From Scyliorhinus canicula (taxonomy: Eukaryota), in contig NC_052149.1 of assembly GCF_902713615.1 (NCBI RefSeq), positions 188,266,593-188,330,592 on the forward strand: a stretch of 64,000 nt of DNA, in the 5' to 3' direction. The notes below the pieces were generated by a model, which made no database searches, had not been told where the DNA came from, and saw only the letters and a list, made by a program, of their open reading frames with translations. Below, piece after piece: positions 1,314 to 63,913 of this stretch; the stretch's first letter is position 1; each line of letters opens with the position of its first letter. The position numbers and the translations under genes are program-made.

Positions 1314-1540
1314 TGTGGTAGGCTATATTAGGGGTATCGCGGTACCTAGGTGGGATGTACCTTCTACTGTAGTATGAGTGGTAGAGCCTGCCTGCTGGTG
1401 CCGCCCAGCAGGCGGAGCATAAGAGTCTGTGTTTCACCCACAGCAGTCATTCTGTGCCGGAGCTGCTGGGGTAACTACTTGTTCATTAAAGCCTTCAATT
1501 GGACTACAATCTCGCTTCAGTAGTGATTGATCGCGCATCG
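1314..1540 (+). mobile_element. Solo LTR, same family as the LTRs at 12246-12470 and 13654-13876
   Basis: Near-identical to those LTRs; starts TGTGG, ends CATCG (CA mutated); 5-bp TSD GAGGG at 1309-1313 and 1541-1545. Confidence 0.93.
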
Positions 1541-2106
1541 GAGGGCACGCTTCTTCTGCTGGAGCCCATTCCGGAAATGTCAGCATCTTTATCAGTAAAG
1601 GAAGTAAAGGTGTAGATTGGTAATGGTAATTTTTTTAAAGGTAGATTGCTCATCTTTAGGTGTAATTGTATTCATTCCTTAAATAACAGTCTACTTCAAC
1701 TATCACGGATAGAATACATGAGGAAAAATCTAAACTATGTCAACTTCTTTAAGAAACTTTTGGGTGGAATAAAGGACTCCAATGACAGGATTCTATTTTC
1801 GAGGATCATCTCTCAAATAATTTGATAACAGTTGTGGTAATATGCCTATGAGCTATATCATAGTTGGATGGTATGAGACCTCCAACCAGCAGTGGTACAG
1901 ACAAACGATGTGGTCTCCAGACCAAGGTCATGTGATCTGGGACCCAGATATACACACCCGGCCATTTTCTGAAGAACAAGGAGAGGGTAATAAGACGCCC
2001 ATATAATTAGTCAGTTCCAGGTGTACGTTCCAGAGGAGTAGAAAGACTCCATGATAACATGCTCTGTATCAGATTGCTGTCCTACCACGAGACATAATAA
2101 AAGGAT

Positions 2107-5682: not shown

Positions 5683-7767
5683 TAACTGGCTCCCGGGGTC
5701 TACTGGCCTCGTCGAGAAGACGCCAGTAGGTGCCGATTAGCACTGATCCCCACAAGCAGGGGCCAGGCAGCATGGCACTTGGGGATCTCCCAGGTGATTG
5801 GAGGCCTCCGGATGGTTGGTATCTGGGCTGGGTGGTACCCTGGCACTGCTGATGCCACTGAGGCACCTTGGCACTGCCAGCCTGGCAGGGCGCTGCCAGT
5901 GCCAAGGTGTCCAGGTGCCATTTTGCCCATGCTGGGGATCGGGCCCAAGGGTGCCCTGCCCATGGGAGGTGGGGTGTGGTAGGGGGAGCTCGAAGACACC
6001 CCAACAGATAGTTCAGGAGTTGCGTCGGGGGCGGGGGGTGGGGTCAAGAGATCAGGGCACCACAACAAATGCAGCTAAGTGCAGCCTCGACGGACATTCC
6101 CAGTGGAGGCCTGAAAAAAAAAGTGCCGTGAGGTAGCAGTCATTACAATTGCGACAAGCACCAGGAACAACCTCTCCAATCCTGCTAAGAACGGTTAGAC
6201 CGCGCCCAACATGATTTAGATATCTAGGCCTCGGGAGTCTCCTCAGAAGGTATCGCATATTTTCATGTAAAAGTCAAGTTTCTGAGACCAAATCTTTGGC
6301 TGGAAAAAGGGGGAGGCTTGACGAATAATACTTTCTCGGGGTTGAACTCCACCTCTCCTTTCATCTTGCTACCTAACTGTTTACTGGGGTACACTAGCCA
6401 ATCACAGAGTGGCCAGGGCAGAGTTCTCCCCAAATCTAGAGCAAATGAAGCCAAAAAGTATTTTTGTTACTTTGCACAGACACGAGATACTAAACAACCA
6501 TCTTCAAATGAGTAGGTTTGCACCATGGCAAGTTTGCCGTCAGCTGTGAACAAGAGGCAAGTACAAGGAGGTCAGATTTTTTGGCGAAAAGTCAAGAGTC
6601 AACTCACAAGTGAGGTCAACTGTTATTCGAGTATATACAGTTTCTGCTTCTTAGTATTATATCCTGCTTATAATCCGAGGCTGACGATAAGTTGACCTTG
6701 CTTTCTCATTAAGTCATTGACTGACTGCTAGTTACAAACAGATAAAATACAATTATATCAATGCTATGGAACAATGCAGATAATTAAAGCAATCCTGAAG
6801 AGGAATAAGGGGTGCTTTATTAAAGGAATGCATTTGAGAGAAGTAAACACTACATACTCAACATTCCAAGTACATTATACATTTGCCATACTTTTCTTAT
6901 TCATTGTTGCTTATCTCATCATTAAAGTCAGTTTTCATTTTCTCCCTTCGTTTTGTCTGCTTATTTTCCCACCACTACTGGCTGATAAACTGTTTTTTGT
7001 TTCAGATCACATTCCCACCATTCTACTGCCACTAACACTATCAACACCCTATTGAATTTCAATTATTTTCCATGTGCCTGTGTTCACTGCCATGCAGAGT
7101 TTTTTTGGTTCCAAAATCTGTTCCCGACTTCCAACTGCTCTGAGAAATCTCTTGTGCAACATTTCACTGCTGCAATTATCGATCCCTTTAATACCCCAAC
7201 GACTCTCATTATCAGACTGCTGTCAGGACAGCATCTTCTTTTCTATTTCCATGATTTTCCTTTGAAAATGAACTTGCTTAGCAAGTTAGCCGATACTCTG
7301 CAGAATCACAGCATGTGGCTCATTGCTGAATGTTTGAGACAATTATTCTCCCCCGACTCTGGACAAAGTATTTGCTCAAAGATGGCCGTTGTTTTATAAA
7401 ACCACTTGGTGCAGACTGTGGTGAATTATAAACCTCAGTAATTCACACTGTATTGTACCACATGTATTGAGCCTGTACTCTGTACCGGATTGTGTGTAAT
7501 CGCGCGGCCCTGCCCATAGGGGGAGACGAGGAGTTTGTACTGGGCTCCACCCTTGGCTCCGCCCATGGCTCCGCCCATGGCACCTCCCCCAACCGGAAGT
7601 ATAAAAGATCAGTGCTGTGAGCTTGCTGCCAGTTCATCTCGAGTTCACCTCATCACAGGCAGGCTCTGTTGTAAGACGATTAAAACCACTGTTCACTTCA
7701 AACCACGTGTCGCATGTATTGATGGTCTCATCAATTTAATCGTCTTAAGAAACAGTAAGAAACGACT

Positions 7768-8870
7768 ATGGAATCAGCCCTCAAACCTGATCGACTGGAA
7801 CTCGACCCACAGGATGCAGAGGAGAAAGAAATCTTTTCACACTGGCTCAGATGTTTCAAGAAACTACGGAGGAGCAGAAACTCAGCCTACTGCACGCAAG
7901 GGTGAGCCATCGTATCTCTACTCAACTTAATTGTACCAACTCATATACGGAGGCCCTGGCCCTGCTCGACAGAATGTACATGAGGCCCGTCAATGAGGTC
8001 TACGCGCTCCACGTTTTTACGACTCGCCGCCTGCGCCCCACAGAATCGCTAGAGGAATTCCTGCGTGATTTAAAGGCCTTATCCCGGGACTGTAATCATC
8101 AAGCTGTAACTGCTGCCGAACACAGGGAACTCGCTGTCCGAGATGTATTCGTTGCAGGCCTCAGGTCCAACTATGTGCGCCAACGGTTGCTTGAGAAGGG
8201 AGCCCAAAACTTAGAAGACACTGTAGAACTCGCCACTACTATGGAGGTCTCGTTCCGCAGCCTCACCTCGTTCCCGCGGACTCAGCGACCCTGTCATGGG
8301 CCCCCGACTGCCCCAGGCCTGCGCAGCGCGCCACCTAGCCACTATACTGCACCAACGTGCCACTTTTGTGGACAGCCCCAGCACCCGCGGGAGCACTGCC
8401 CGGCCCGCAACGCGACCTGCAGCAGCTGCGGTCGCAAAGGACACTATGCCCGGGTATGCTTGGCAAAGAAAACTCCAGCCCCAAACTCTCTCGCAGCCCA
8501 GAGCACTCGCTCTCCAAACTCGCAGGCCCGCAGGCCCCGTAACGCTGCGGCCTGTACTCCGACTCCACCCCCAACCGTCACGTGCGACCCATGGGGCCGT
8601 CATCTTGGCAACCCCCCACCACGCGGCCGGCCACGTGCGACTCATAGGGGCCGCCATCTTGGACACCATCTTCCTCGCCGCCCGTCACGTGCGATCCACT
8701 TGGGCGGCCATCTTGGGCTCCATCCTCTCCAAACTCAGAAACTCAAATCGAAGACTGCGACCTCAGCGGGCATTCATCACGGGGCCACTCCAGCACAGCT
8801 GATCGAGCCGCCAACTACCCACAACTCAGGGCGGTCACATTGGACCAGTCGCGTCCAAAACACCTCTGAA
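7768..8870 (+). pseudogene. gag: E1 gag (frameshifted)
   Basis: ATG at 7768 reads MESALKPDRLELDPQ; RDVFVAGL motif; tandem zinc knuckles CHFCGQPQHPREHC and CSSCGRKGHYARVC. Confidence 0.88.
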
Positions 8871-8875
8871 ACTCG

Positions 8876-11700
8876 ATGATGACCGTTAAAATCAATGGGT
8901 ACAGTACACCGTGCCTCTTCGACTCCGGGAGCACCGAGAGCTTCGTACACCCAGATCTGGTAAGACGCTGTTCGCTCCCTGTTTTTCCTGCACGGCAAAC
9001 TATCTCCCTCGCTTCGGGCTCCCACTCTGTTCACCTCCAAGGGCACACCGTCGCGACTCTTAACGATCCAATTTTCAAATTTACAATCCAATCCAAAACT
9101 CGAATTTTCAGCTATACGTCCTGCCCGAACTCTGCGCCCCACTCTTACTGGGACTTGATTTCCGGTGTAATCTCAAAAGTCTCACACTGAGCTTCGGCGG
9201 ACCCCTACCTCCACTCACTATCTGCAGTCTAGCGATGCTAAGAATCTCCCCCCCGCCACTCTTTGTCAATCTCACTCCGGACTGTAAACCCGTAGCCACT
9301 CGCAGCAGGCGGTACAGCCTGCAGGACAGGGTGTTTATCAGAACCGAGGTCCGGAGGCTCCTACGTGAGGGGATCATAGAGGCCAGTAACAGCCCCTGGA
9401 GAGTTCAGGTGGTGGTCGTCAAGACCGGGGAAAAATTCCGAATGGTAGTGGACTACAGTCAGACCATTAATCGGTTCACGCTCCTCGATGTGTACCCCCT
9501 CCCCAGGATTGCAGACATGGTGAATCAGATCGCCCAGTATCGTATTTTCTCCACGGTGGATCTGAAGTCTGCATACCACCAGCTCCCAATCCGCCCGGAG
9601 GACCGCCACTAGACGGCGTTCGAGGCCGATGGCCGCCTCTTCCATTTCCTCCAGGTTCCCTTTGGCGTCACGAACGGGGTCTCGGTGTTCCAACGAGCAA
9701 TGGACCAAATGGTGGACCAGTACGGGCTGCGGGCCACGTTTCCGTACTTGGATAACGTCACCATCTGCGGCTATGACCAGCAGGACCACGATGCCAACCT
9801 CCATCGATTTCTCCAGACGGCCCAGAAACTCAACCTCACTTACAACACGGAGAAATGCGTTTTCCGCACGACCAGACTAGCCATCCTCGGCTGTGTCGTG
9901 GAAAACGGAGTCCAGGGCCCCGACCCGGACCGTATGCGCCCCCTCTTAGAACTCCCTCTCCCTCATTGTCCCAGGGCCCTCAAAAGGTGCCTGGGATTCT
10001 TCTCGTATTATGCCCAGTGGGTCCCTCAATATGCGGACAAAGCCCGCCCACTATTTAAGGCCACACTCTTCCCTCTGTCGGATGAGGCTCGTCAGGCCTT
10101 CACTCGGATCAAGGAGGACATCGCCAAAGCGGCCATGCGGGCGGTGGATGAATCCATCCCTTTTCAGGTAGAGAGCGATGCCTCAGAGGTAGCTCTCGCA
10201 GCCACTTTAAATCAGGCAGGGAGACCAGTCGCCTTTTTCTCCCGAACCCTCTCCGCTTTGGAACTTCGACACTCCTCGGTCGAAAAAGAAGCACAAGCCA
10301 TTGTGGAGGCTATTCGTCACTGGAGGCACTACCTCGCAGGTAGAAGGTTCACCTTCATCACCGACCAAAGATCGGTTGCCTTCATGTTTGACAACTCTCA
10401 AAGGGGCAAAATAAAAAATGATAAAATCCTGAGGTGGAGGATCGAACTCTCCACCTACAAATACGATATTATGTATCGACCGGGGAAGCTCAACGAGCCC
10501 CCAGATGCCCTGTCCCGCGGTACGTGCGCCAGCGCAAAAAACGACCGCCTGAAAGCCATCCACAATGACCTCTGCCACCCGGGGGTCACCCGGCTCGCCC
10601 AGTACGTCAAAGCCCAAAATCTGCCTTTCTCCACTGAGGAGGTAAAAGCCATCACCAGTGACTGCCCGATCTGTGCGGAGTGCAAACCGCAATTCTATAG
10701 ACCAGACAGGGCCAACCTGGTCAAGGCTTCTCGGCCCTTTGAACGCCTCGCTATCGATTTCAAAGGGCCACTCCCCTCGACTAATCGGAATGTGTACTTC
10801 CTGAATGTCATCGACGAGTTCTCCCGCTTCCCCTTTGCTATCCCGTGCCCCGATATGACCTCCCACACAGTCATTAGGGCCCTGCATAGCATCTTCACCC
10901 TGTTTGGTTTCCCCAGCTACGTACACAGCGACAGGGGTTCGTCCTTCATAAACGACAAGCTGCGTCAGTACCTGCTTGGCAAGGGCATCGCCTCGAGCAG
11001 GACTACCAGCTATAACCCCAGGGGAACGGGCAGGTGGAGAGGGAGAATGCGACGGTCTGGAAGACCGTCCTACTGACCTTCTGGTCCAGGAAGCTCCCAA
11101 CCTCCCATTGGCAGGAGGTCCTCCCCGACGCGCTCCGTGCTATTAGGTTGCTCCTATGTATGGCCACCAACCAGACCCCTCACGAGCGGCTTTGTTTTTC
11201 CCAGGGGCACTACGACGGGTGCTTCGCTCCCAGCATGGTTGAAGACACCGGACCCAGTACTCCTCCTGAAGCACGTCAGGGCACACAAAACTGACCCACT
11301 CGTAGAAAGAGTGCTCCTACTCCACTCAAACGCCTTCATAGAGTACCCTGACGGCCGTCAGGACACTGTATCCCTCTGGGACCTAGCGCCTGCAGGATCT
11401 AATCCCACCACTACCACCGCCGAGGTACCCCTCACACTACTCCCCACCCAACTCGCCGCACCCCATGCCCCCGCACCTACCGGTTCGCTACCCACGTTCC
11501 GCACACCCGCGCCCACAAGCTTCCAGCACTCCCGGTCACCAGTCGAACCAGTCGGGTACGAAGCTCGGACAGAATCACCCCCGGAGTCCTCCATCGTACC
11601 CCAACCAACCGTTATCGTCCAGCCACCAGAAGAGGTTGCAACTCCAGTGCTCCGCCGATCACAAAGGACAACTCGGCCACCGGACAGACTCAATTTGTAG
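8876..11700 (+). pseudogene. pol: E1 pol (protease, RT, RNase H, integrase) with stops and frameshifts
   Basis: PR LFDSGS; RT FRMVVDY, VDLKSAYHQ, YLDN; RH ESDASEVA, EKEAQAIV; IN H..H..CPIC, IDFKGP, HSDRGSSF, ERENATV. Confidence 0.93.
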
Positions 11701-22920: not shown

Positions 22921-24339
22921 GGGGTGCACAGGAAGGGGGGGGGGGGAGCGGGTTGGCCTGGCCAGGTACCAGCTGGCAACAGTGGCGCCCATGCAGCCCA
23001 TGGCACTTGGCTTCAGAGGAGGGTATGGGCAATGATACCCCCACCCCCTGCAGACAGTTATGTTTGGTCATCACCCAGCGATGTTGGCCGCCTTGGCAGG
23101 AGCCGACCTTCTACATGTTGCCCTGTAGGAGCTGGAGCAGGAACATGCCAGGGAGGCAGCAGAGGCTGCCACAGAGGGGCAGGTGGCAGCCGCCCAAGCA
23201 GGAAAACCGCCCGCCCGACAGGATGAGGAGGAGGAGGAGGAGGAGGAGGAGGAGGAGGAGGTGGTGCCATGGCGATGGAGGCGCCCGATGAGACCCCGTG
23301 TGTACCGGCACCGCTCATCGTACCAGGACCTCACAGACCGGGCATGCAGGAGGAGACTCATGTCTGCCATCTCATGGCACACCTGGCACCGCGTAGCACT
23401 GGGGGAAGACACTCTCTCCCGGTGGCCGTCAAGGTTACTGTGGCCCTGAACTTCTACACGGCGGGGTCATTCCAGTCGTCGAGTGGGGACCTGTCCGGCA
23501 TCTCCCAGGCATCGGTGCACAGGTGCATCCGTGCAGTGACTGACGCCCTGTATGACATCGCAGACCGGTATATCCAGTTCCCTGTGGACCTCACCCACCA
23601 GGATGCCCGGGCAACGGGATTCGCTGCCATAGCCAGGATACCCATGGTCCAGGGGGTGATCAATGGGATGCACGTCGCCTTGCAGCTACCATCAGGTAAC
23701 AGGGCTGTGTTCACGAACAGGAAGGGGACCGACTCCATGAATGTTCATGTGGTCTGTGACCACCGGATGAGGATCATGCACCCGGTACCCACGCCGTGTG
23801 CATTGTTTTGTTACCTGTATGGCAGGTAACATGTGCTACTCAATTCAGTTACAGCATACGCTTTCGGAAAAATGCTCAAAGTCGTCCAGAAGTTTTGCAT
23901 AAAGTTTATTGAGTAACACAACTTAAATAACTGCTTGAGCTCTTACATTAAGAACTGTACTAGTAGAAAGATGTGGAGATGCCGGCGTTGGACTGGGGTG
24001 AGCACAGTAAGAAGTCTTACAACACCAGGTTAAAGTCCAACAGGTTTGTTTCAAACACGAGCTTTCGGAGCACGGCTCCTTCTTCAGGTGAATGGAAAGG
24101 CTTGTTCCAGAAATGTTTATATAGACACAGTCAGAGATGCCCGGAATGCGAGCACCTGCAGGCAATCAAATCATCAAAGATGCAGAGAGAGAGGTAACTC
24201 CAGGTTAAAGAGGTGTGAATTGTCCCAAGCCAGTTCAGTCGGTAGGCCTCTGCAAGTCCAGGCTTGTTGGTGGGGGCCGAATGTAATGCGACATGAATCC
24301 CAGATCCCGGTTGAGTCCGCATTCATGCGTGCGGAACTT

Positions 24340-25822
24340 CTGTCGCGACACGACGGACTTCCTACAGAAACTCAGCACCCATGGACCAGTTGAACCAGGA
24401 ACATTCCTCGTCACAATGGATGTCTCGGCACTCTACACCAGCATCCCCCATGACGACGGCATTGCTGCAACAGCCTCAGTCCTCAACACCGACAACTGCC
24501 AATCTCCAGACGCAATTCTGCAACTCATCCGTTTCATTCTAGACCACAACGTCTTCACCTTCGACAACAAATTCTTCATCCAGACGCACGGAACAGCCAT
24601 GGGGACCAAATTTGCACCTCAATATGCCAACATCTTCATGCACAAGTTTGAACAGGACTTCCTCACCACACAGGACTTTCAACCGATGCTATACACCAGA
24701 TACATCGATGACATTTTTTTCCTTTGGACCCACGGCGAGACATCACTGAAACGACTACACGATGACATCAATAAGTTCCATCCCACCATCAAACTCACCA
24801 TGGACTATTCTCCAAATTCAGTTCCATTCTTGGACACACTCGTCTCCATCAAGGACGGTCACCTCAGCACCTCGCTTTACCGCAAGCCCACAGATAATCT
24901 CACAATGCTCCACTTCTCCAGCTTTCACCCGAAACACATTAAAGAAGCCATCCCCTATGGACAAGCCCTCCGTATACACAGGATCTGCTCAGACAAGGAG
25001 GAGCGCAACAGACACCTACAGATGCTGAAAGATGCCCTCGTACGAACGGGATATGGCGCTCGACTCATTGATCGACAGTTCCACCGCGCCACAGCAAAAA
25101 ACCGCACCGACCTCCTCAGAAGACAAACACGGGACACCACTGACAGAGTACCCTTCGTCGTCCAGTACTTTCCTGGGGCGGAGAAACTACGACATCTTCT
25201 TCGCAGCCTCCAACACATCATCAGCGAGGATGGACATCTTGCCAAGGTCATCCCCACACCCCCACTACTGGCCTTCAAACAACCGCGCAACCTCAAACAA
25301 ACCATTGTTTGCAGCAAATTACCCAGCCTTCAGAACAGCAACCACAACACCACAAAACCCTGCCAGGGTAATCTCTGCAAGACATGCCAGATCATCGACA
25401 TGGACACCACCATTACACGTGGAAACACCACCCACCAGGTACGCGGCGCATACTCGTGCGACTCGACCAATGTAGTCTACCTCATACGCTGCAGGAAAGG
25501 ATGTCCCGAAGCGTGGTACATTGGCGAGACCATGCAGACACTGCGACAACGAATAAACGGGCATCGTGCGACTATCAACAGGCAGGACTGTTCCCTTCCA
25601 GTTGGGGAACACTTCAGCAGTCAAGGACATTCAGCCTCTGATCTCCGGGTCAGCATTCTACAAGGAGGCCTTCAGGAGACGCGACAACGCAAAATTGCTG
25701 AGCAAAAACTTATAGCTAAGTTCCGCACGCATGAATGCGGACTCAACCGGGATCTGGGATTCATGTCGCATTACATTCGGCCCCCACCAACAAGCCTGGA
25801 CTTGCAGAGGCCTACCGACTGA
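24340..25822 (+). CDS. Penelope RT plus GIY-YIG endonuclease (N-terminally truncated, otherwise open)
   Basis: MDVSALYTSIP, QTHGTAMG, RYIDD, FLD; GIY-YIG domain VVYLIRC..WYIGET..LRQRINGH..EQKLI..GLN. Confidence 0.94.
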
Positions 25823-25966
25823 ACTGGCTTGGGACAATTCACACCTCTTTAACCTGGAGTTACCTCTCTCTCTGCATCTTTGATGATTTGATTGCCTGCA
25901 GGTGCTCGCATTCCGGGCATCTCTGACTGTGTCTATATAAACATTTCTGGAACAAGCCTTTCCATT

Positions 25967-26001
25967 CACCTGAAGAAGGAGCCGTGCTCCGAAAGCTCGT
26001 G
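25967..26001 (+). ncRNA. Minimal type I hammerhead ribozyme in the Penelope pseudo-LTR (second copy on - at 24056-24090)
   Basis: CAC-CTGAAGA-A-GGAGC(CGT)GCTCC-GAAA-GCTC-GTG: CUGANGA core, stem II, GAAA, short self-complementary stem III, stem I CAC/GTG. Confidence 0.82.
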
Positions 26002-27172
26002 TTTGAAACAAACCTGTTGGACTTTAACCTGGTGTTGTAAGACTTCTTACTAGTAGAAAGGTTACAACTTTTCTATACACTAGAACTAGGCCTGAACACA
26101 CAAGCAGCCCTGAACTATATCGCTGCCTTTGTTCTCCTCACAGTCTAATCAACCAAAGAGCCTTGAGGGCTGCTTGCTTCCCCCTTTATACCCGCCAGTG
26201 CTGCCCCCTAGTGGTCTTTCCATTTCCCATCAGCCCCTTCTGTACATAACTATGTGAAGATCACTACATGCATGACTCTTTCATTGGTACAATGTCGGGG
26301 TGTGGTCGAGAGGGGCTTTGGGCTTCTGAAGATGCGCTTCAGGTGGCTGGACTGCTCTGGAGGGGCCCTCCAGTACACTTCGGAGAGGGTTGGCTGCATC
26401 GTTGTGGTCTGCTGCATCCTGCACAACATAGCCCAGCAGAGGGGCGATGTGCTGGAGGCAGAGGAGGGGGAGGGGAAGCAACACAACAAAGGGCAGGCCT
26501 CCCCAGATGAGGAGGACGGGGGCAATGTACAGGACAGACAGGCTGGACATGGACGGGAGGCTGCCCACCGTTACCAGCTGACCCAGCGGGCACAGGACGG
26601 GCTGATAGCCGCACGGTTCACAGACTTGGGGATTGTGGGAATCGCCGAGTATGGGCACGGACAGCACAGTACGGCACCAGCCCACCATCCTCACCCCACC
26701 CACCCTCACCCCACCCGCATGTACACCACCCCTCCATTGCACATCCACCTGCGGGACAAGGGGCAGACTCACACTGTCACCAGTGGAAGCGGATCTATTG
26801 CATGCCATGGAGGATGATGACGACCCGCTCTGTGATGAGCTCTGGGCTCTACATCGTTGGACAATGTCTGACTCGTGGCCACAGTAAGACCGTCCACCTA
26901 GACCGTCCCTGCATGCGGCCGTGACACTGCAGCGCACGGTCTGCCCGGGGGACTGGCGAGGGCGACCCGGGGAGGAGGGGGCACACTCACCTGAACCTGA
27001 CGTCCTATCACCCCTCACAAACACACTGGCGCTCACCTCACACCCCACCCCTGAATGCATCGGACAGAGCACAGAGGCAGCTTCAGTAGGTGTGAAAGTG
27101 ATTTTAATGGCAAACAGTTCATACACATGCCCTAACCCCTGTAACTAACCTGTGCCCTGCACCCTTGCCAAC

Positions 27173-50173: not shown

Positions 50174-51398
50174 TGTGGCGCTAACAATTGCACACAAAGA
50201 CTCAAGACATGTACAATCAAGGCTTTATTGCTGTGTGATGCTATTCCTCCAGCGGAAGCTTTAGAATAGGATCTCTGTGACTCACACGCATATTTATACA
50301 CAAGCACCCTGTGGGCGGAGGTAGCCGGCAGGGGCTTACCGGAGGAACCTGTATTACAGGTACAGCCATACATCCCCCTACTGCAAGTACACATATCTAC
50401 AGTGGTTATATCACCACATTCACCCCCTGTAAAAAATGAGTCCGGCGGGGGTGACGTGTAACTATAATACAAAGGATGACCTATATGCAAAAGGGTTCAA
50501 ACAAAGAAAAGCAAGAGTCCATCCGGTTAGCAGGTTACAGGTTGAGCCGAATCGGCGGTCGAACATTCTGCTGTGATCGGCGTAGCTGTGGTGGCGACGT
50601 CGGCACAGGCGGTGATGGCAACGATGGTGCAGGTGCTAGCGGGATGACTCAGAGAGTGAGCCAAAATCTTCCGTGTCCTCCAGTGTGGGCAGGGGGACGA
50701 GGGATGGACCTGGTGGGGACGAATACGGGGGCGCCGGGGAAAGAGAGGGTGGCGCGGGGGGGGAAAGGTGCGTGGGCATGGGATCAGCACCTGAGGAAGC
50801 CAGGTCCTGGAGCGAGACTGTGTCCTGGCGGCCGTCGGGGAACTCCACGTAGGCATACTGAGGGTTGGCGTGGAGTAGGCGTACTTTGTCCACCAGTGGT
50901 TACTTCCGTCTTGTGGTGCCGGACATGCCTATGGAGAAGGACTGGGCCCGGAGTCGTGAGCCAAGTCTTGAGTGCAGGAGTTGTCTTTTTTGAGCCTCCG
51001 TCGGGGGAGGGTCCGCTGAAGAGATGTAGGCCTCGAAGACTGCAAGCCAGTGAACAAAGTCTTTCCTGGCGTGAGGCGACTGCGGATCCAGCTGCAGACA
51101 GTCAGGCTTGATCCTAATGTCCATGGTGTAAGGAAAATCACACAGCAATAAATTGTGCTGCTAACAATTGCACACAAAGATTCGAGACATGTACAATCGA
51201 GGCTTTATTGCTGTGTGATGCTATTCCTCCGGCGGCAGCTGTAGAATAGGATCTCAGTGACTCACACGCATAGTTATACACAAGCTCCCTGTGGGCGGAG
51301 CTAGCCGGCAGGGGCTTACCGGAGGAACCTGTATTACAGGTACAGCCATACATTCCCCTACTGCAAGAACACATATCTACAGTGGTTATATCACCACA
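50174..51398 (-). mobile_element. Internally deleted Gypsy element (E3), same lineage as E1 and E2
   Basis: LTRs 51154-51398 (5') and 50174-50418 (3'); TSD CTCCC at 50169-50173 and 51399-51403; gag start MDIRIKPDCLQLDPQ joined to an integrase tail LLHANPQYAYVEFPDGRQDTVSL; PPT ACAGGGGGTGAA. Confidence 0.94.
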
Positions 51399-57750: not shown

Positions 57751-58489
57751 GGGCGCGATTCTCCGCTCCCCAGGCCGGGTGGGAGAATCGCGGGAGGGCC
57801 GCTCTGGCACCCCCTGCGATTCTCCCACCCCCCCCCCAAAATGGCGTGTCGCGTTTTGCAACACGTCGCTCTGAGAATCGTGGGCCGCCGTTTTTCACGG
57901 CGGCCCGCGATTCTCCGACCCGGATGGGCCGAGCGGCCTGCCGTTCCCGACTGGTTCACGCCAGCGGCAACCACACCTGGTCACTGCCGGCGTGAATATG
58001 GCGCCGACAGCTGTTTTGTGGCTTGTGGGGGGCAGAGAGGGGAATGATCACCACGACTGTGCTCGGGAGGGGACTGGCCCACGATCGGTGCCCACCGATC
58101 GTTGGGCCGGCGTCTCAAAGGGACGCACTCTTTCCCCTCCACCGCTTCGCAAGATCAAACCACCACGTCTTGCGGAGCAGCGGAGGGGAAAACGGCAACC
58201 GCGAATGCGTGGGTTCGAGCCGTCATCCGGCGTGACGTCAGCCGCGCATGCGCGGGTTGGAGCCGGCCAACCCGCGCATGCGCAGCTGACGTCATTAGGC
58301 GTGTCGGCCGCGTCATTCTCGGCGCACCGGGCCTTGACGCCAGCGACAATGCCCGGCGGCCGAGATTCACGGCACGGCCCTCCTACCCCCCCGGCGGGGG
58401 GAGAATTGGGGGCCAGGAGCGGCCTCCGACATCGTCGTGAACCTCTCCAGGTTTCACGACGGCGTCGGGCCTGGCGGAGAATTCCGCCC
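57751..58489. mobile_element. Harbinger-type MITE inserted in a CR1 endonuclease remnant (~57280-58560)
   Basis: Termini GGGCGCGATTCTCC / GGAGAATTCCGCCC; colinear with 63149-63839. Confidence 0.85.
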
Positions 58490-59738
58490 TTCGTCTAGTA
58501 TGTAAAACACCAAACTAGGAAGGAAGCACTGATGGATTAAATTAATAAGAACAAATGTATTCTTTCTACTTTTCAAGTAAAAGTAGAAACTACGGTGAGC
58601 ATGAAAAAACAGGAACAGACTGTTCAGCTCCTCAAATCTGTTACATCATTCTGTTAGATCAGGTCTGATCTGCACTCAATTCCAGAAACAGCAAATGAAG
58701 AGGACACTCAGTGTGCATCCCTCCACCACACTGTGTTAACTCAATGTTATTACAATTGCACAGCTCTTCTTTCAAAAATAAAATCAGATTTTTTTTGTGA
58801 AGAGCCTCATCTCACTCAGAAGGCTTTGACTAATCCACATCCAACACCCTGCTCTGAAAGCGCTGCTCACACTTTGACAACTGTAACAAATTTCATAATA
58901 TCCTAAAACAACCAACAACATTATAAGTAAAGCAATCAACAACAATCCAAACAAAATTTATTTTGCCCCATCTCCCAATGTTAATGTAAGGATCCTTAAA
59001 AAAATTTCCAGGACCTTCAGCAAAAACTAGTCAGTTCTTCCTTCACCCATACCTTACCTATGTGACATTAGATTTTTTTTTACAAGTCAAAACATTGAGT
59101 GGAATTTTACGGCTCCTTCCATCATCAAAATCCTGTGGTCCCACCTCAGTCAATGGGCTTTGGAATGGCTCGCAGCGTTTTACTGCCCTGCCTCTGCACA
59201 ACAGGGCTGTAAAATTCCAACTATTATGTGGTTGGAGATAGCAGGTCTGTCAGCATCGATGACAAGAGAAACCAGTATTGGTCTAGAATGCATACATTAA
59301 TTTGCCTTTTCCCTTTCCTGATGCTAACTAACCTGCCGTTCATTTAAGGTTTTCAATTTAGCTTAACGTAATTGGCTGGCTGTATTTAAAAAAATCTTTT
59401 GTTATATACATATTGTGTAATCTGTAGTTTTAACAAAACTCTCTTTCAGCCACACATGTTAAGGTGAGAAAGAGTGAACTGACTCACCTCTAATCAGCCT
59501 CCTCGGTTGGTCACAACAAAGGTTTCAAATTTCAAAACTCTTTTTGAGAAGGATATACCTTTTCTGAATCCATAAGTATTTAACTATTTATTCAGTGAAC
59601 AATAAGGAGCCAAATCAGACTGGACTTCCTGGAGTTAAATAAAAAATACATTTAGTAACATCAAGCCAGAGAGAAAAAATAATAAGAAAAATGCCACACT
59701 GCACACACAGGTTAGGGTTAGGGCAGAAATGAGGGAAG

Positions 59739-62390: not shown

Positions 62391-63913
62391 TGTTGCTCTG
62401 TTTTGGCCCCAACAGCATCGCCAATAATGTTGCTCTGTTTCGGTCCCAACAGCGTCGCCAATACTGTGGGTATTTCTATTTATCTTAGTGAATCACAAGC
62501 CTTTCCTTATATCGATCAAATGACCACACAACCAGTTAGTTAATTCAAAATATGGTTTATTTACATACACAAGAGTTATCTCAATATGCAAACACAATAT
62601 CTACTATGGGTTAAAGTACACCTACAGCTACAATAACCTATACTTAACTTCAGGGTAACCGGCATTGTGCAAATGGATAAGGCCTTTATTTGGATTTCAC
62701 TTGGCTGGTGCGAAGAAAGTGGCTCTGTCTCTGCTGGGCTCATCCGTCAGGTAGCAATCGTTGGTCTTGAACTTAGCTCGCTGTTTCTGCCACGATTGGG
62801 TTGGGGCAGGCCAGAGACAGAACACATGGCTGTGCTCTCTTTTATCCCTCTGGGATTTCGCGCTCTTAACCTTGGTCCTTCACCTTGGACCCAATAGTTC
62901 GACAGGGCTCTGATCACTCTCTTCGATTTCGGCCAATAAAGGGGCGGGTACCTTGGTGGATGGGCCTTAGCGGTCAATGACCTTGGCAGTTGTGCTTTCT
63001 GAGTAAGGGAGTGGCGCCGATCAGTCTGTGGCTGTACCAGTTGCTTGATTGGAGTTCTATTGTCCTGGGAAAATGGGCCATTAAAATGCAAACAAGCGTG
63101 GGTTTCAATCAGGTCTGGTTACCTGTGTTTTAGATACACATAGGCTGTGGCCGCGATTCTCTGCAACCACGATGGGTGGGAGAATAGCGGGAGGACCACT
63201 CCAGCACCTCCCGCTATTCTCCCACCCCCCCAAAATGGCATGTCCGGTTTTCCGACTCGCCGCTCGGAGAAACGCGGGCCACCGTTTTTCACGGCGGCCT
63301 GCGATTCTCCGACCCGGATGGGCCGAGCGGCCTGCCGTTCCCGAACTGTTCACGACGGCGGCAACCAAACCTGGTCGCTGCCTTCGTGAACATGGCGCCC
63401 CAGGTAAGTGCGGGGCCTAGGGGGGGCGGATCAGGGATCGAGCACCATGACCATGCTCGGGAGGGGACTGGCCTGTGATCGGTGCCCACCGATCACGGGC
63501 CGGCGTCTCAAGGGGACGCACTCTTTCCCCTCCACCGTCCTGTAAGATCAAGCCGCCACGTCTTGCGGGGCGGCTGAGGGGAAAGACGGCAACCACGCAT
63601 GCGTGGGTTTGAGCTGTCCAATCTGCGCATGCGCAGCTGACGTCATTAGGCACAGCCACGGCGTCATTCTTGGCGCGCCGAGCCTTGAAGCCAGGGACAA
63701 GGCCCGGCCGCCAAGTTTCCCGGTACGGCATCCTATCCCCCCGGGTAGGGGAGAAAAGGGGGCCGGGAGAGGCTTCAAACGCTGTTGTGAACCTCTCCAG
63801 GTTTCACGACGGCGCCTGGCCTTGCGGAGAATTCCGCCCTGTGTATCTGTCCGAGTCCTGGGTTGGCCATAATTCCCATGGTCCTTTGCAGGTGGCCATC
63901 TTAGATGGCTACA
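62391..63913 (-). mobile_element. Long solo LTR (possibly ERV-type) inserted in a minus-strand CR1 tail and interrupted by a MITE
   Basis: TG...CA ends; imperfect 4-bp TSD CCTT/CCGT; minus-strand AATAAA at ~62556; 37-bp tandem duplication at 62391-62463. Confidence 0.55.
63149..63839. mobile_element. Harbinger-type MITE
   Basis: Termini GGCCGCGATTCTC / GGAGAATTCCGCCC; TSD TGT at 63146-63148 and 63840-63842. Confidence 0.87.

Follow-up and report, generated by a model that had tools for sequence, protein, structure and literature searches.

How does a long terminal repeat (LTR) retrotransposon begin minus-strand DNA synthesis when the sequence behind its 5' LTR resembles no binding site for a transfer RNA (tRNA)? 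Minus-strand priming defines LTR retroelements and is nearly always ascribed to host tRNAs, and self-priming has been regarded as peculiar to the Tf1/sushi chromoviruses and to a small number of plant lineages. The question is raised by a 64,000-nucleotide (nt) stretch of the Scyliorhinus canicula genome (contig NC_052149.1, positions 188,266,593 to 188,330,592 of the forward strand; all of it here called the window), which holds three elements of Ty3/Gypsy type, E1, E2 and E3. In each of them the sequence that starts one nucleotide past the 5' LTR is the exact reverse complement of a segment inside the element's own LTR, this partner segment ends on a hexamer of the polyadenylation (poly(A)) signal type, and the two arms are conserved and change together across 19 families. 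We propose that these elements probably prime reverse transcription with a piece of their own RNA, as Tf1 does.

The arrangement is seen most fully in E1, whose 5' LTR ends in CATCA and is followed by a single spacer A and then by the 13-nt sequence TTTAATCGTCTTA. In the LTR its exact reverse complement is TAAGACGATTAAA, a segment that is also carried by the 3' LTR and whose 3' end is the last A of an ATTAAA hexamer, with ACC next. An imperfect extension of the duplex pairs CTGTT (7666-7670) with AACAG (7751-7755). The sequence-only reading that drew attention to this locus had described this complement, together with the same geometry in different sequences in E2 and E3; every base of it is confirmed in E1, and both other elements bear the description out (Table 1). 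The variable part of the duplex is wholly different among the three elements, and the shift of the hexamer from ATTAAA to AATAAA is mirrored in the leader by a shift from TTTAAT to TTTATT. The borders of the E1 LTRs are secure because the two copies match at 94%, have TG...CA ends, adjoin a purine tract and are flanked by a 5-base-pair (bp) target-site duplication (TSD), CAGAC. The minimum-free-energy (MFE) fold of E1 positions 7664-7755 contains the LTR/leader duplex (z = -3.6), as do the MFE folds of all six leaders tested (z from -2.9 to -5.7), and imperfect pairing runs on past the perfect duplex in E1, in E3 and in a coral element. A search of Rfam with window positions 7300-7900 gave no match.

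Relatives were found with the E1 open reading frame (ORF) for reverse transcriptase, RNase H and integrase (RT-RH-IN) as the query, and DNA was fetched around several of the matches. The closest come from the stingray Hypanus sabinus (69-77% identity), and matches at 49-61% identity come from corals, Hydra, Nematostella, an octocoral, a rotifer, Trichinella, a cephalopod, echinoderms, a tunicate and Lepidoptera. In the coral Oculina the leader reads A and then TTTAATCACCA, the reverse complement of TGGTGATTAAA in the LTR. In Nematostella the A is followed by TTTACTCAACAT, which pairs with ATGTTGAGTAAA; the hexamer here is AGTAAA, and the leader matches the change. The cephalopod Argonauta carries a 15-nt complement ending on ATTAAA, and locus L007 one of 12 nt. 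A scan of metagenome contigs yielded 80 further loci, which were analysed both through their LTR pairs and independently of LTRs, by comparing the ~50 nt before the gag ATG with the 200 nt upstream for reverse complements of at least 9 nt. The two analyses return the same register.

The Oculina copy deserves separate description. In Oculina patagonica (L001:5572-9663), 241-bp LTRs that are 100% identical and an intact TSD, GACTG, enclose a single, uninterrupted gag-pol ORF of 1192 amino acids; because of these three features we take the copy to have inserted very recently. Despite its youth, its duplex has an indel just past 11 perfect pairs.

E1, E2 and E3 and at least 16 more families, from coral, sea anemone, cephalopod and metagenome contigs, make up the 19 families compared here. 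The covariation between LTR and leader noted in the window thus extends to 16 further families, and its regularity is strict. The duplex spans 11-19 nt (mean 14.4) and consists of Watson-Crick pairs only, without G-U, in 19/19 families; the spacer after the terminal CA is always one nucleotide (A in 18 families, G in one); and the LTR partner always ends in AAA. ATTAAA is the commonest hexamer (9 families), followed by AATAAA (5), GTTAAA (2) and AGTAAA, TTTAAA and TTAAAA (one each), and the leader matches every one of them. The bases after the hexamer are GCC in 13 families and ACC in the other 6. Co-change can also be seen within a single family, where locus L015 has the partner ..GTTTATTAAA and the leader TTTAATAAAC.., against ..GTTGATTAAA and TTTAATCAAC.. 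in its sisters L023, L025, L049 and L078: a G-to-T change in the partner accompanied by C to A in the leader.

No leader among the 19 starts with TGG, as the sequence-only reading had claimed for the window, and the 17-50 nt between LTR and gag ATG contain no separate tRNA-type site in any of the families; in several, the self-complementary primer-binding site (PBS) takes up almost the whole leader. ARAGORN found no tRNA gene in the window, and its single call in 30 loci, a tRNA-Pyl in L087, was not used. In a tree of pol sequences E1 stands beside the stingray copy, and the self-complement trait is spread over the whole sampled tree. Among the loci that gave a less complete picture, the Hydra copy (L002) is truncated, lies within tandem repeats and has a 9-nt match only, Trichinella L005 has a repeat pair 8.4 kilobases (kb) apart that lacks TG..CA ends, and no LTR pair was found in Apostichopus L004. 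L042, L047, L065 and L066, in which the LTR borders could not be settled, and Hypanus P0002, P0085 and P0049, for which there was no DNA, stand outside the family count.

To what lineage do these elements belong? On several sequence features E1, E2 and E3 are Ty3/Gypsy (Metaviridae) elements, as the sequence-only reading had said. Pfam places the domains of E1 and of the intact coral polyprotein in the Gypsy order protease (PR), RT, RNase H, integrase; the best matches in the PDB are Ty3 Gag-Pol (7q5b, E = 5e-76) and Ty3 RT (4ol8); and the hallmarks of the group are present in TSDs (CAGAC in E1, GGGAG in E3, GACTG in the coral), a polypurine tract (PPT) of the form ..GGGGGTGAA and TG..CA LTR ends. 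The intact coral copy has two CCHC knuckles and PR-RT-RH-IN in one ORF. No chromodomain (PF00385) was found at E <= 0.1 in its 1192-residue polyprotein or in the C-terminal ORF of E1, nor do the precomputed Pfam lists of the 120 best relatives include one. By this architecture, with two CCHC knuckles, one ORF and no chromodomain, the clade is distinct from the Tf1/sushi chromoviruses. In Foldseek comparisons with Swiss-Prot, identity is 22% to 17.6, 22% to 297, 18-21% to Tf2 and 19-20% to Ty3, so that Tf2 is not specially close.

From these features, the three elements appear to belong to an old, animal-wide Gypsy clade with one gag-pol ORF, no chromodomain and LTRs of 150-320 bp. The 'Mag C' elements of the Mag/SURL group occur across animals including vertebrates, with LTRs of ~170 bp and ends of the form TGTNATRT...AYANAACA (PMC3601003). 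Our clade resembles them in its short LTRs, single ORF and animal distribution, and similar LTR ends are found in Argonauta (TGTGATGT) and in the coral, L011 and L032 (..TACAACA), but E1 and E3 begin TGTGGTG. Judged by such features, the clade is probably Mag/SURL-like. Membership in CsRn1 was considered as well and is ruled out by a Gag with two ordinary CCHC knuckles.

Self-priming is by far the best reading of this anatomy because LTR and leader covary both in E1, E2 and E3 and in the 16 families found elsewhere. To our knowledge, every LTR element needs a minus-strand primer next to U5, and the duplex reads as that primer site rather than as a mere mask because its one-nucleotide adjacency to the terminal CA defines the end of the complementary DNA (cDNA). 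Its perfect, G-U-free arms that change together are likewise better explained by a primer site than by an ordinary RNA helix. We infer from this that a Tf1-like mechanism is likely, in which the RNA would be cut at the 3' edge of the duplex, after the hexamer, and reverse transcriptase would extend the new end.

In the cycle that we propose, the genomic RNA would fold back so that an 11-19 nt segment of R, ending on the last A of the hexamer, pairs one nucleotide past U5. The element's RNase H would then cleave between AWUAAA and the conserved RCC, where the duplex ends on its 3' side. The new 3'-OH would be extended through the spacer and U5 to give a minus strong-stop DNA of ~21-70 nt, which would jump to the 3' R by way of the 10-25 nt that separate the hexamer from the poly(A) site. 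Plus-strand synthesis would copy the RNA primer, and the primer-binding sequence would in this way be rewritten from the LTR in every cycle. Such recopying, as with tRNA primers and in Tf1, would account for arms that are always perfectly Watson-Crick and change together. More tentatively, we suggest that the priming piece is an internal part of R cut exactly after the hexamer, and that one duplex could combine the roles of primer, 5' mask and template for per-cycle rewriting, leading to rapid co-change; this fuller version seems to us possible rather than probable. A primer derived from the trimmed 3' copy of R, which the sequence-only reading had offered as another source, found no support and is rejected, since an RNA that has been cleaved and polyadenylated carries no 3'-OH at its hexamer.

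The place of the partner within the RNA bears on this fuller version. In animals the distance from TATA box to transcription start site (TSS) is about 30 nt. The TATA-like box that had been noticed upstream of the partner lies at a measured distance of ~63-72 nt: 68-72 nt in E1 and E3, which have a canonical TATA box, and ~63 nt in E2, which has only a weak CATAAGAG. An initiator (Inr)-like CAGT(T)CAT follows the box by ~30 nt in E1 and E2, and TATAAA(T/G) and CAGTTCATC motifs also occur in RNA reads of relatives. Contig L038, with a layout R-U5...U3-R-U5 and a putative RNA origin, begins 36 nt upstream of the partner. Judging from the TATA/Inr spacing and the start of L038, the first base of the partner appears to fall at about +36 to +42 of the RNA. 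According to the RNA-seq reads, relatives are transcribed, and different leaders follow the same LTR end in other family members. In the invertebrate LTRs of L001, L003, L007 and L011, a CCGCCATNTTTG-like motif (YY1/initiator-like) that may mark the transcription start precedes the primer segment by ~20-45 nt; in its place the window elements have GC boxes and a TATA box.

Several observations weigh against the self-priming model. In Tf1, plus strong-stop DNA ends at the PBS since the primer is the RNA's first 11 nt. With the partner ~35-40 nt inside the RNA, a hypothetical second cut or other stop would be needed, without which plus strong-stop synthesis would continue into the upstream part of the primer. 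RNA-seq for E1 gave neither a TSS nor a poly(A) site, with more than 90% of the reads coming from diverged relatives and aligning only in part. The partner is not freely variable, since 17 of the 19 families have G at its position -10, and part of the similarity between families must therefore reflect shared ancestry or an extra constraint. A nested subclade, L053/L054, keeps the self-complement with a partner that has no poly(A)-type hexamer, which implies that the poly(A) link is not obligatory and that masking is not essential to the design. Finally, leaders were compared with tRNAs by the universal CCA/TGG rule rather than with host tRNA sets. In the nested subclade (L053:92-198 and L054:1-140) the self-complement is 12-14 nt long and adjoins the LTR end, and in L054 the partner may sit upstream of a TATA-like stretch.

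Could the complementarity have arisen by chance, or from misplaced LTR borders? AT-rich leaders can match AT-rich LTR segments, and one set of shuffled leaders did reach 13 nt, but none of 5000 shuffles matched the observed length in five of six elements (4/5000 in the coral element), each of the six complements starts exactly 1 nt past its LTR, TSDs and comparison of 5' and 3' LTRs pin down the borders, and 19 families belonging to several phyla share this register; we regard this explanation as refuted. A duplex that serves regulation or packaging alone, for example by occluding the 5' poly(A) signal, with a tRNA fragment or another host RNA as the true primer, has more to recommend it. Partition-function folding of six elements predicts the hexamer to be paired in the 5' context (probability of being unpaired 0.01-0.12) and open in the leaderless 3' context in four of them (0.51-0.82), and the imperfect helix extensions suggest selection on structure. 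The folding thus makes it plausible that the duplex has a second role, concealing the hexamer in the 5' copy alone, and the sequence-only proposal of 5' masking stands in silico for these four elements. It does not stand for E1 or Nematostella, where unmasking in the 3' context fails, and this failure, like the L053/L054 subclade that retains the self-complement without the hexamer, tells against a purely regulatory duplex. Furthermore, the 17-50 nt leaders offer no other candidate primer site, 19 leaders that all differ would each need a host RNA of their own, and the exact 1-nt spacing and perfect G-U-free arms fit a templated primer site. A duplex without a priming role is therefore very improbable.

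The more serious question is whether self-priming follows the geometry that Tf1 and Tj1 use (PMC4600332). The TSS would then lie at the 5' edge of the partner, the primer would be the first 11-19 nt of the RNA and R would measure ~30 nt; an AAUAAA so near the cap would be inactive by position, and its overlap with the primer a by-product of a very short R. Plus-strand transfer would need no second cut, the perfect complement, with its sharp 5' ends, would have just the length of the primer, and in L053 an AT-rich, TATA-like stretch does lie ~38 nt upstream of the partner. The TATA box of E1 and E3 and the Inr-like motif of E1 and E2 nevertheless point to a start well upstream of the partner, most families have no TATA or Inr at the right distance from the partner's start, and E1, E3 and the coral element show imperfect pairing past the perfect duplex; the start of L038 points the same way, weakly, as its RNA origin is putative. 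We consider a start at the partner's edge rather unlikely. The sequence-only view that the partner is internal to the RNA accordingly stands on TATA/Inr spacing and one transcript-like contig, and is opposed by the logic of plus-strand transfer in Tf1, which argues for a 5' end.

Table 1. Features of the three elements and of a solo LTR, in window coordinates (+, forward strand; -, reverse strand).
Feature	Position	Strand	Evidence or remark
E1 TSD CAGAC, left copy	7412..7416	+	same 5 nt at 12060-12064, right after the 3' LTR
E1 5' LTR, 317 bp, TGTGG...ATCA	7417..7733	+	94% identity to 11745-12059; TG..CA ends
E1 TATA-like box TATAAAAG	7600..7607	+	read in sequence; putative promoter function
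E1 Inr-like CCAGTTC	A at 7631, +31 from TATA-like box	+	read in sequence
E1 LTR partner (candidate self-primer) TAAGACGATTAAA	7672..7684	+	exact reverse complement of 7735-7747
E1 single spacer A	7734	+	between LTR-terminal CA (7733) and primer-binding sequence
E1 primer-binding sequence TTTAATCGTCTTA, self-complementary PBS, 13 nt	7735..7747	+	complement to LTR partner
E1 gag-PR-RT-RH-IN coding region, degenerate	7768..11700	+	ORF list; Pfam PR, RVT_1, RT_RNaseH, rve
E1 PPT ..ACAGGGGGTGAA	11730..11744	+	abuts 3' LTR; motif also precedes E2 and E3 3' LTRs
E1 3' LTR	11745..12059	+	5'/3' LTR comparison
E2 5' LTR, without first 2 nt	12246..12470	+	96% identity to 13654-13876
E2 LTR partner TTTGTTCATTAAA, ends on ATTAAA	12408..12420	+	reverse complement of E2 leader
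E2 primer-binding sequence TTTAATGAACAAA	12472..12484	+	1 nt (A) after LTR; gag ATG at 12493
E2 3' LTR	13654..13876	+	LTR comparison
E3 5' LTR	51154..51398	-	94% identity to 50174-50418
E3 TSD GGGAG	51403-51399 and 50173-50169	-	
E3 LTR partner ATCACACAGCAATAAA, ends on AATAAA	51219-51204	-	reverse complement of E3 leader
E3 primer-binding sequence TTTATTGCTGTGTGAT, 16 nt	51137..51152	-	1 nt (A) after LTR; gag ATG at 51124
E3 3' LTR	50174..50418	-	LTR comparison
Solo LTR of E2 family, TSD GAGGG	1316..1548	+	

All three copies in the window are damaged. The coding region of E1 lies in at least five ORF pieces, with frameshifts near 7850-7930, 8876 and 9190-9235 and in-frame stops at 9612-9685 and 11076-11137. 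E2 (12246-13876, forward strand) retains only a gag fragment between its LTRs, and E3 (51398-50174, reverse strand) is mostly deleted, with an interior of only ~735 bp. A 186-bp sequence that follows the E1 3' LTR (12060-12245, starting with the TSD CAGAC) recurs after the E2 3' LTR (13877-14064) at 93% identity, giving the layout E1-A-E2-A, where A is the repeat; the E2 5' LTR is missing its first 2 nt, and no TSD accompanies it. One possibility is that E2 cDNA was captured at a break and that repair copied from the similar end of the E1 LTR.

Elsewhere in the window, a perfect (100%) 334-bp inverted repeat (24006-24339 and 25718-26051) encloses a 509-amino-acid RVT_1 ORF (24293-25822), and may represent either a DIRS-like element bounded by inverted terminal repeats or a fold-back produced in assembly. 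A tandem array of ~21 copies of a 20-bp unit occupies 15759-16182, and a GC-rich array of 15-16-bp units at 22358-22944 overlaps long ORFs on both strands. GC-rich 700-bp direct repeats with 82% identity (57751-58490 and 63149-63840), 5.4 kb apart and without a Gypsy-like leader, are a different repeat family and not part of the self-priming finding.

If our reading is correct, a second, unrelated and widespread animal clade self-primes, and independence from tRNAs either evolved repeatedly or is ancient. Annotation pipelines in which a tRNA PBS is required would systematically miss or downgrade such elements, whereas the signature of CA, one nucleotide and the complement of an LTR hexamer segment could be used to find members and their exact LTR ends in new genomes. 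The fixed register on the hexamer would also provide a simple and testable model for the old problem of silencing the poly(A) signal in the 5' R while using that in the 3' R. The poly(A) hairpin of human immunodeficiency virus type 1 (HIV-1) is a known counterpart: AAUAAA lies in R at both ends of the RNA, its 5' copy has to be kept silent, and the hexamer is used less when base-paired. That hairpin lies within R and forms at both ends, whereas the partner described here is downstream of U5, at the 5' end only and at the primer site.

Among tRNA-primed Ty3/Gypsy elements, CsRn1 and Boudicca have a tRNA-Trp PBS (PMC3587641). Our elements share with this group (Ty3, gypsy, CsRn1/Boudicca) the LTRs, a PBS 0-2 nt after CA, the PPT and the order gag-PR-RT-RH-IN, and differ from it in a PBS that does not start with TGG and matches their own LTR rather than the 3' end of a tRNA. 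Self-priming itself is established for Tf1 and Tf2 of Schizosaccharomyces pombe and Tj1 of S. japonicus (PMC4600332), and has been predicted for several fungal elements, for vertebrate Tf1/sushi elements and for the plant elements Tcn1 and TAR (PMC4600332, PMC6934838, PMC6317226); the vertebrate prediction goes back to Butler et al. 2001, as cited in PMC4600332 and PMC6317226. The prediction for Tf1/sushi and for Tcn1/TAR, like ours, rests on complementarity between LTR and post-LTR sequence alone and includes vertebrate hosts, but those elements are chromodomain-bearing Gypsy or, in the case of TAR, Copia, and the parts of this literature available to us mention no link to the poly(A) hexamer for Tf1/sushi, Tcn1 or TAR. 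In the full-text literature, whose coverage does not extend to key older papers, we found no description of self-priming in the present clade or of the hexamer register.

The closest parallel is with Tf1, Tf2 and Tj1, which likewise have no tRNA PBS and whose post-LTR sequence complements their own LTR transcript, over 11 nt in Tf1 and 11-19 nt here. In Tf1, experiments have identified the primer as the initial 11 nt of the mRNA, which RNase H releases, whereas the RNA of the present elements probably starts ~35-40 nt upstream of the partner; the partner here ends on a poly(A)-type hexamer, and the elements that carry it are non-chromoviral. Thus, while the principle of self-priming is already known, its presence in a non-chromoviral, animal-wide clade and the invariant register of the primer segment on the hexamer appear to be new.

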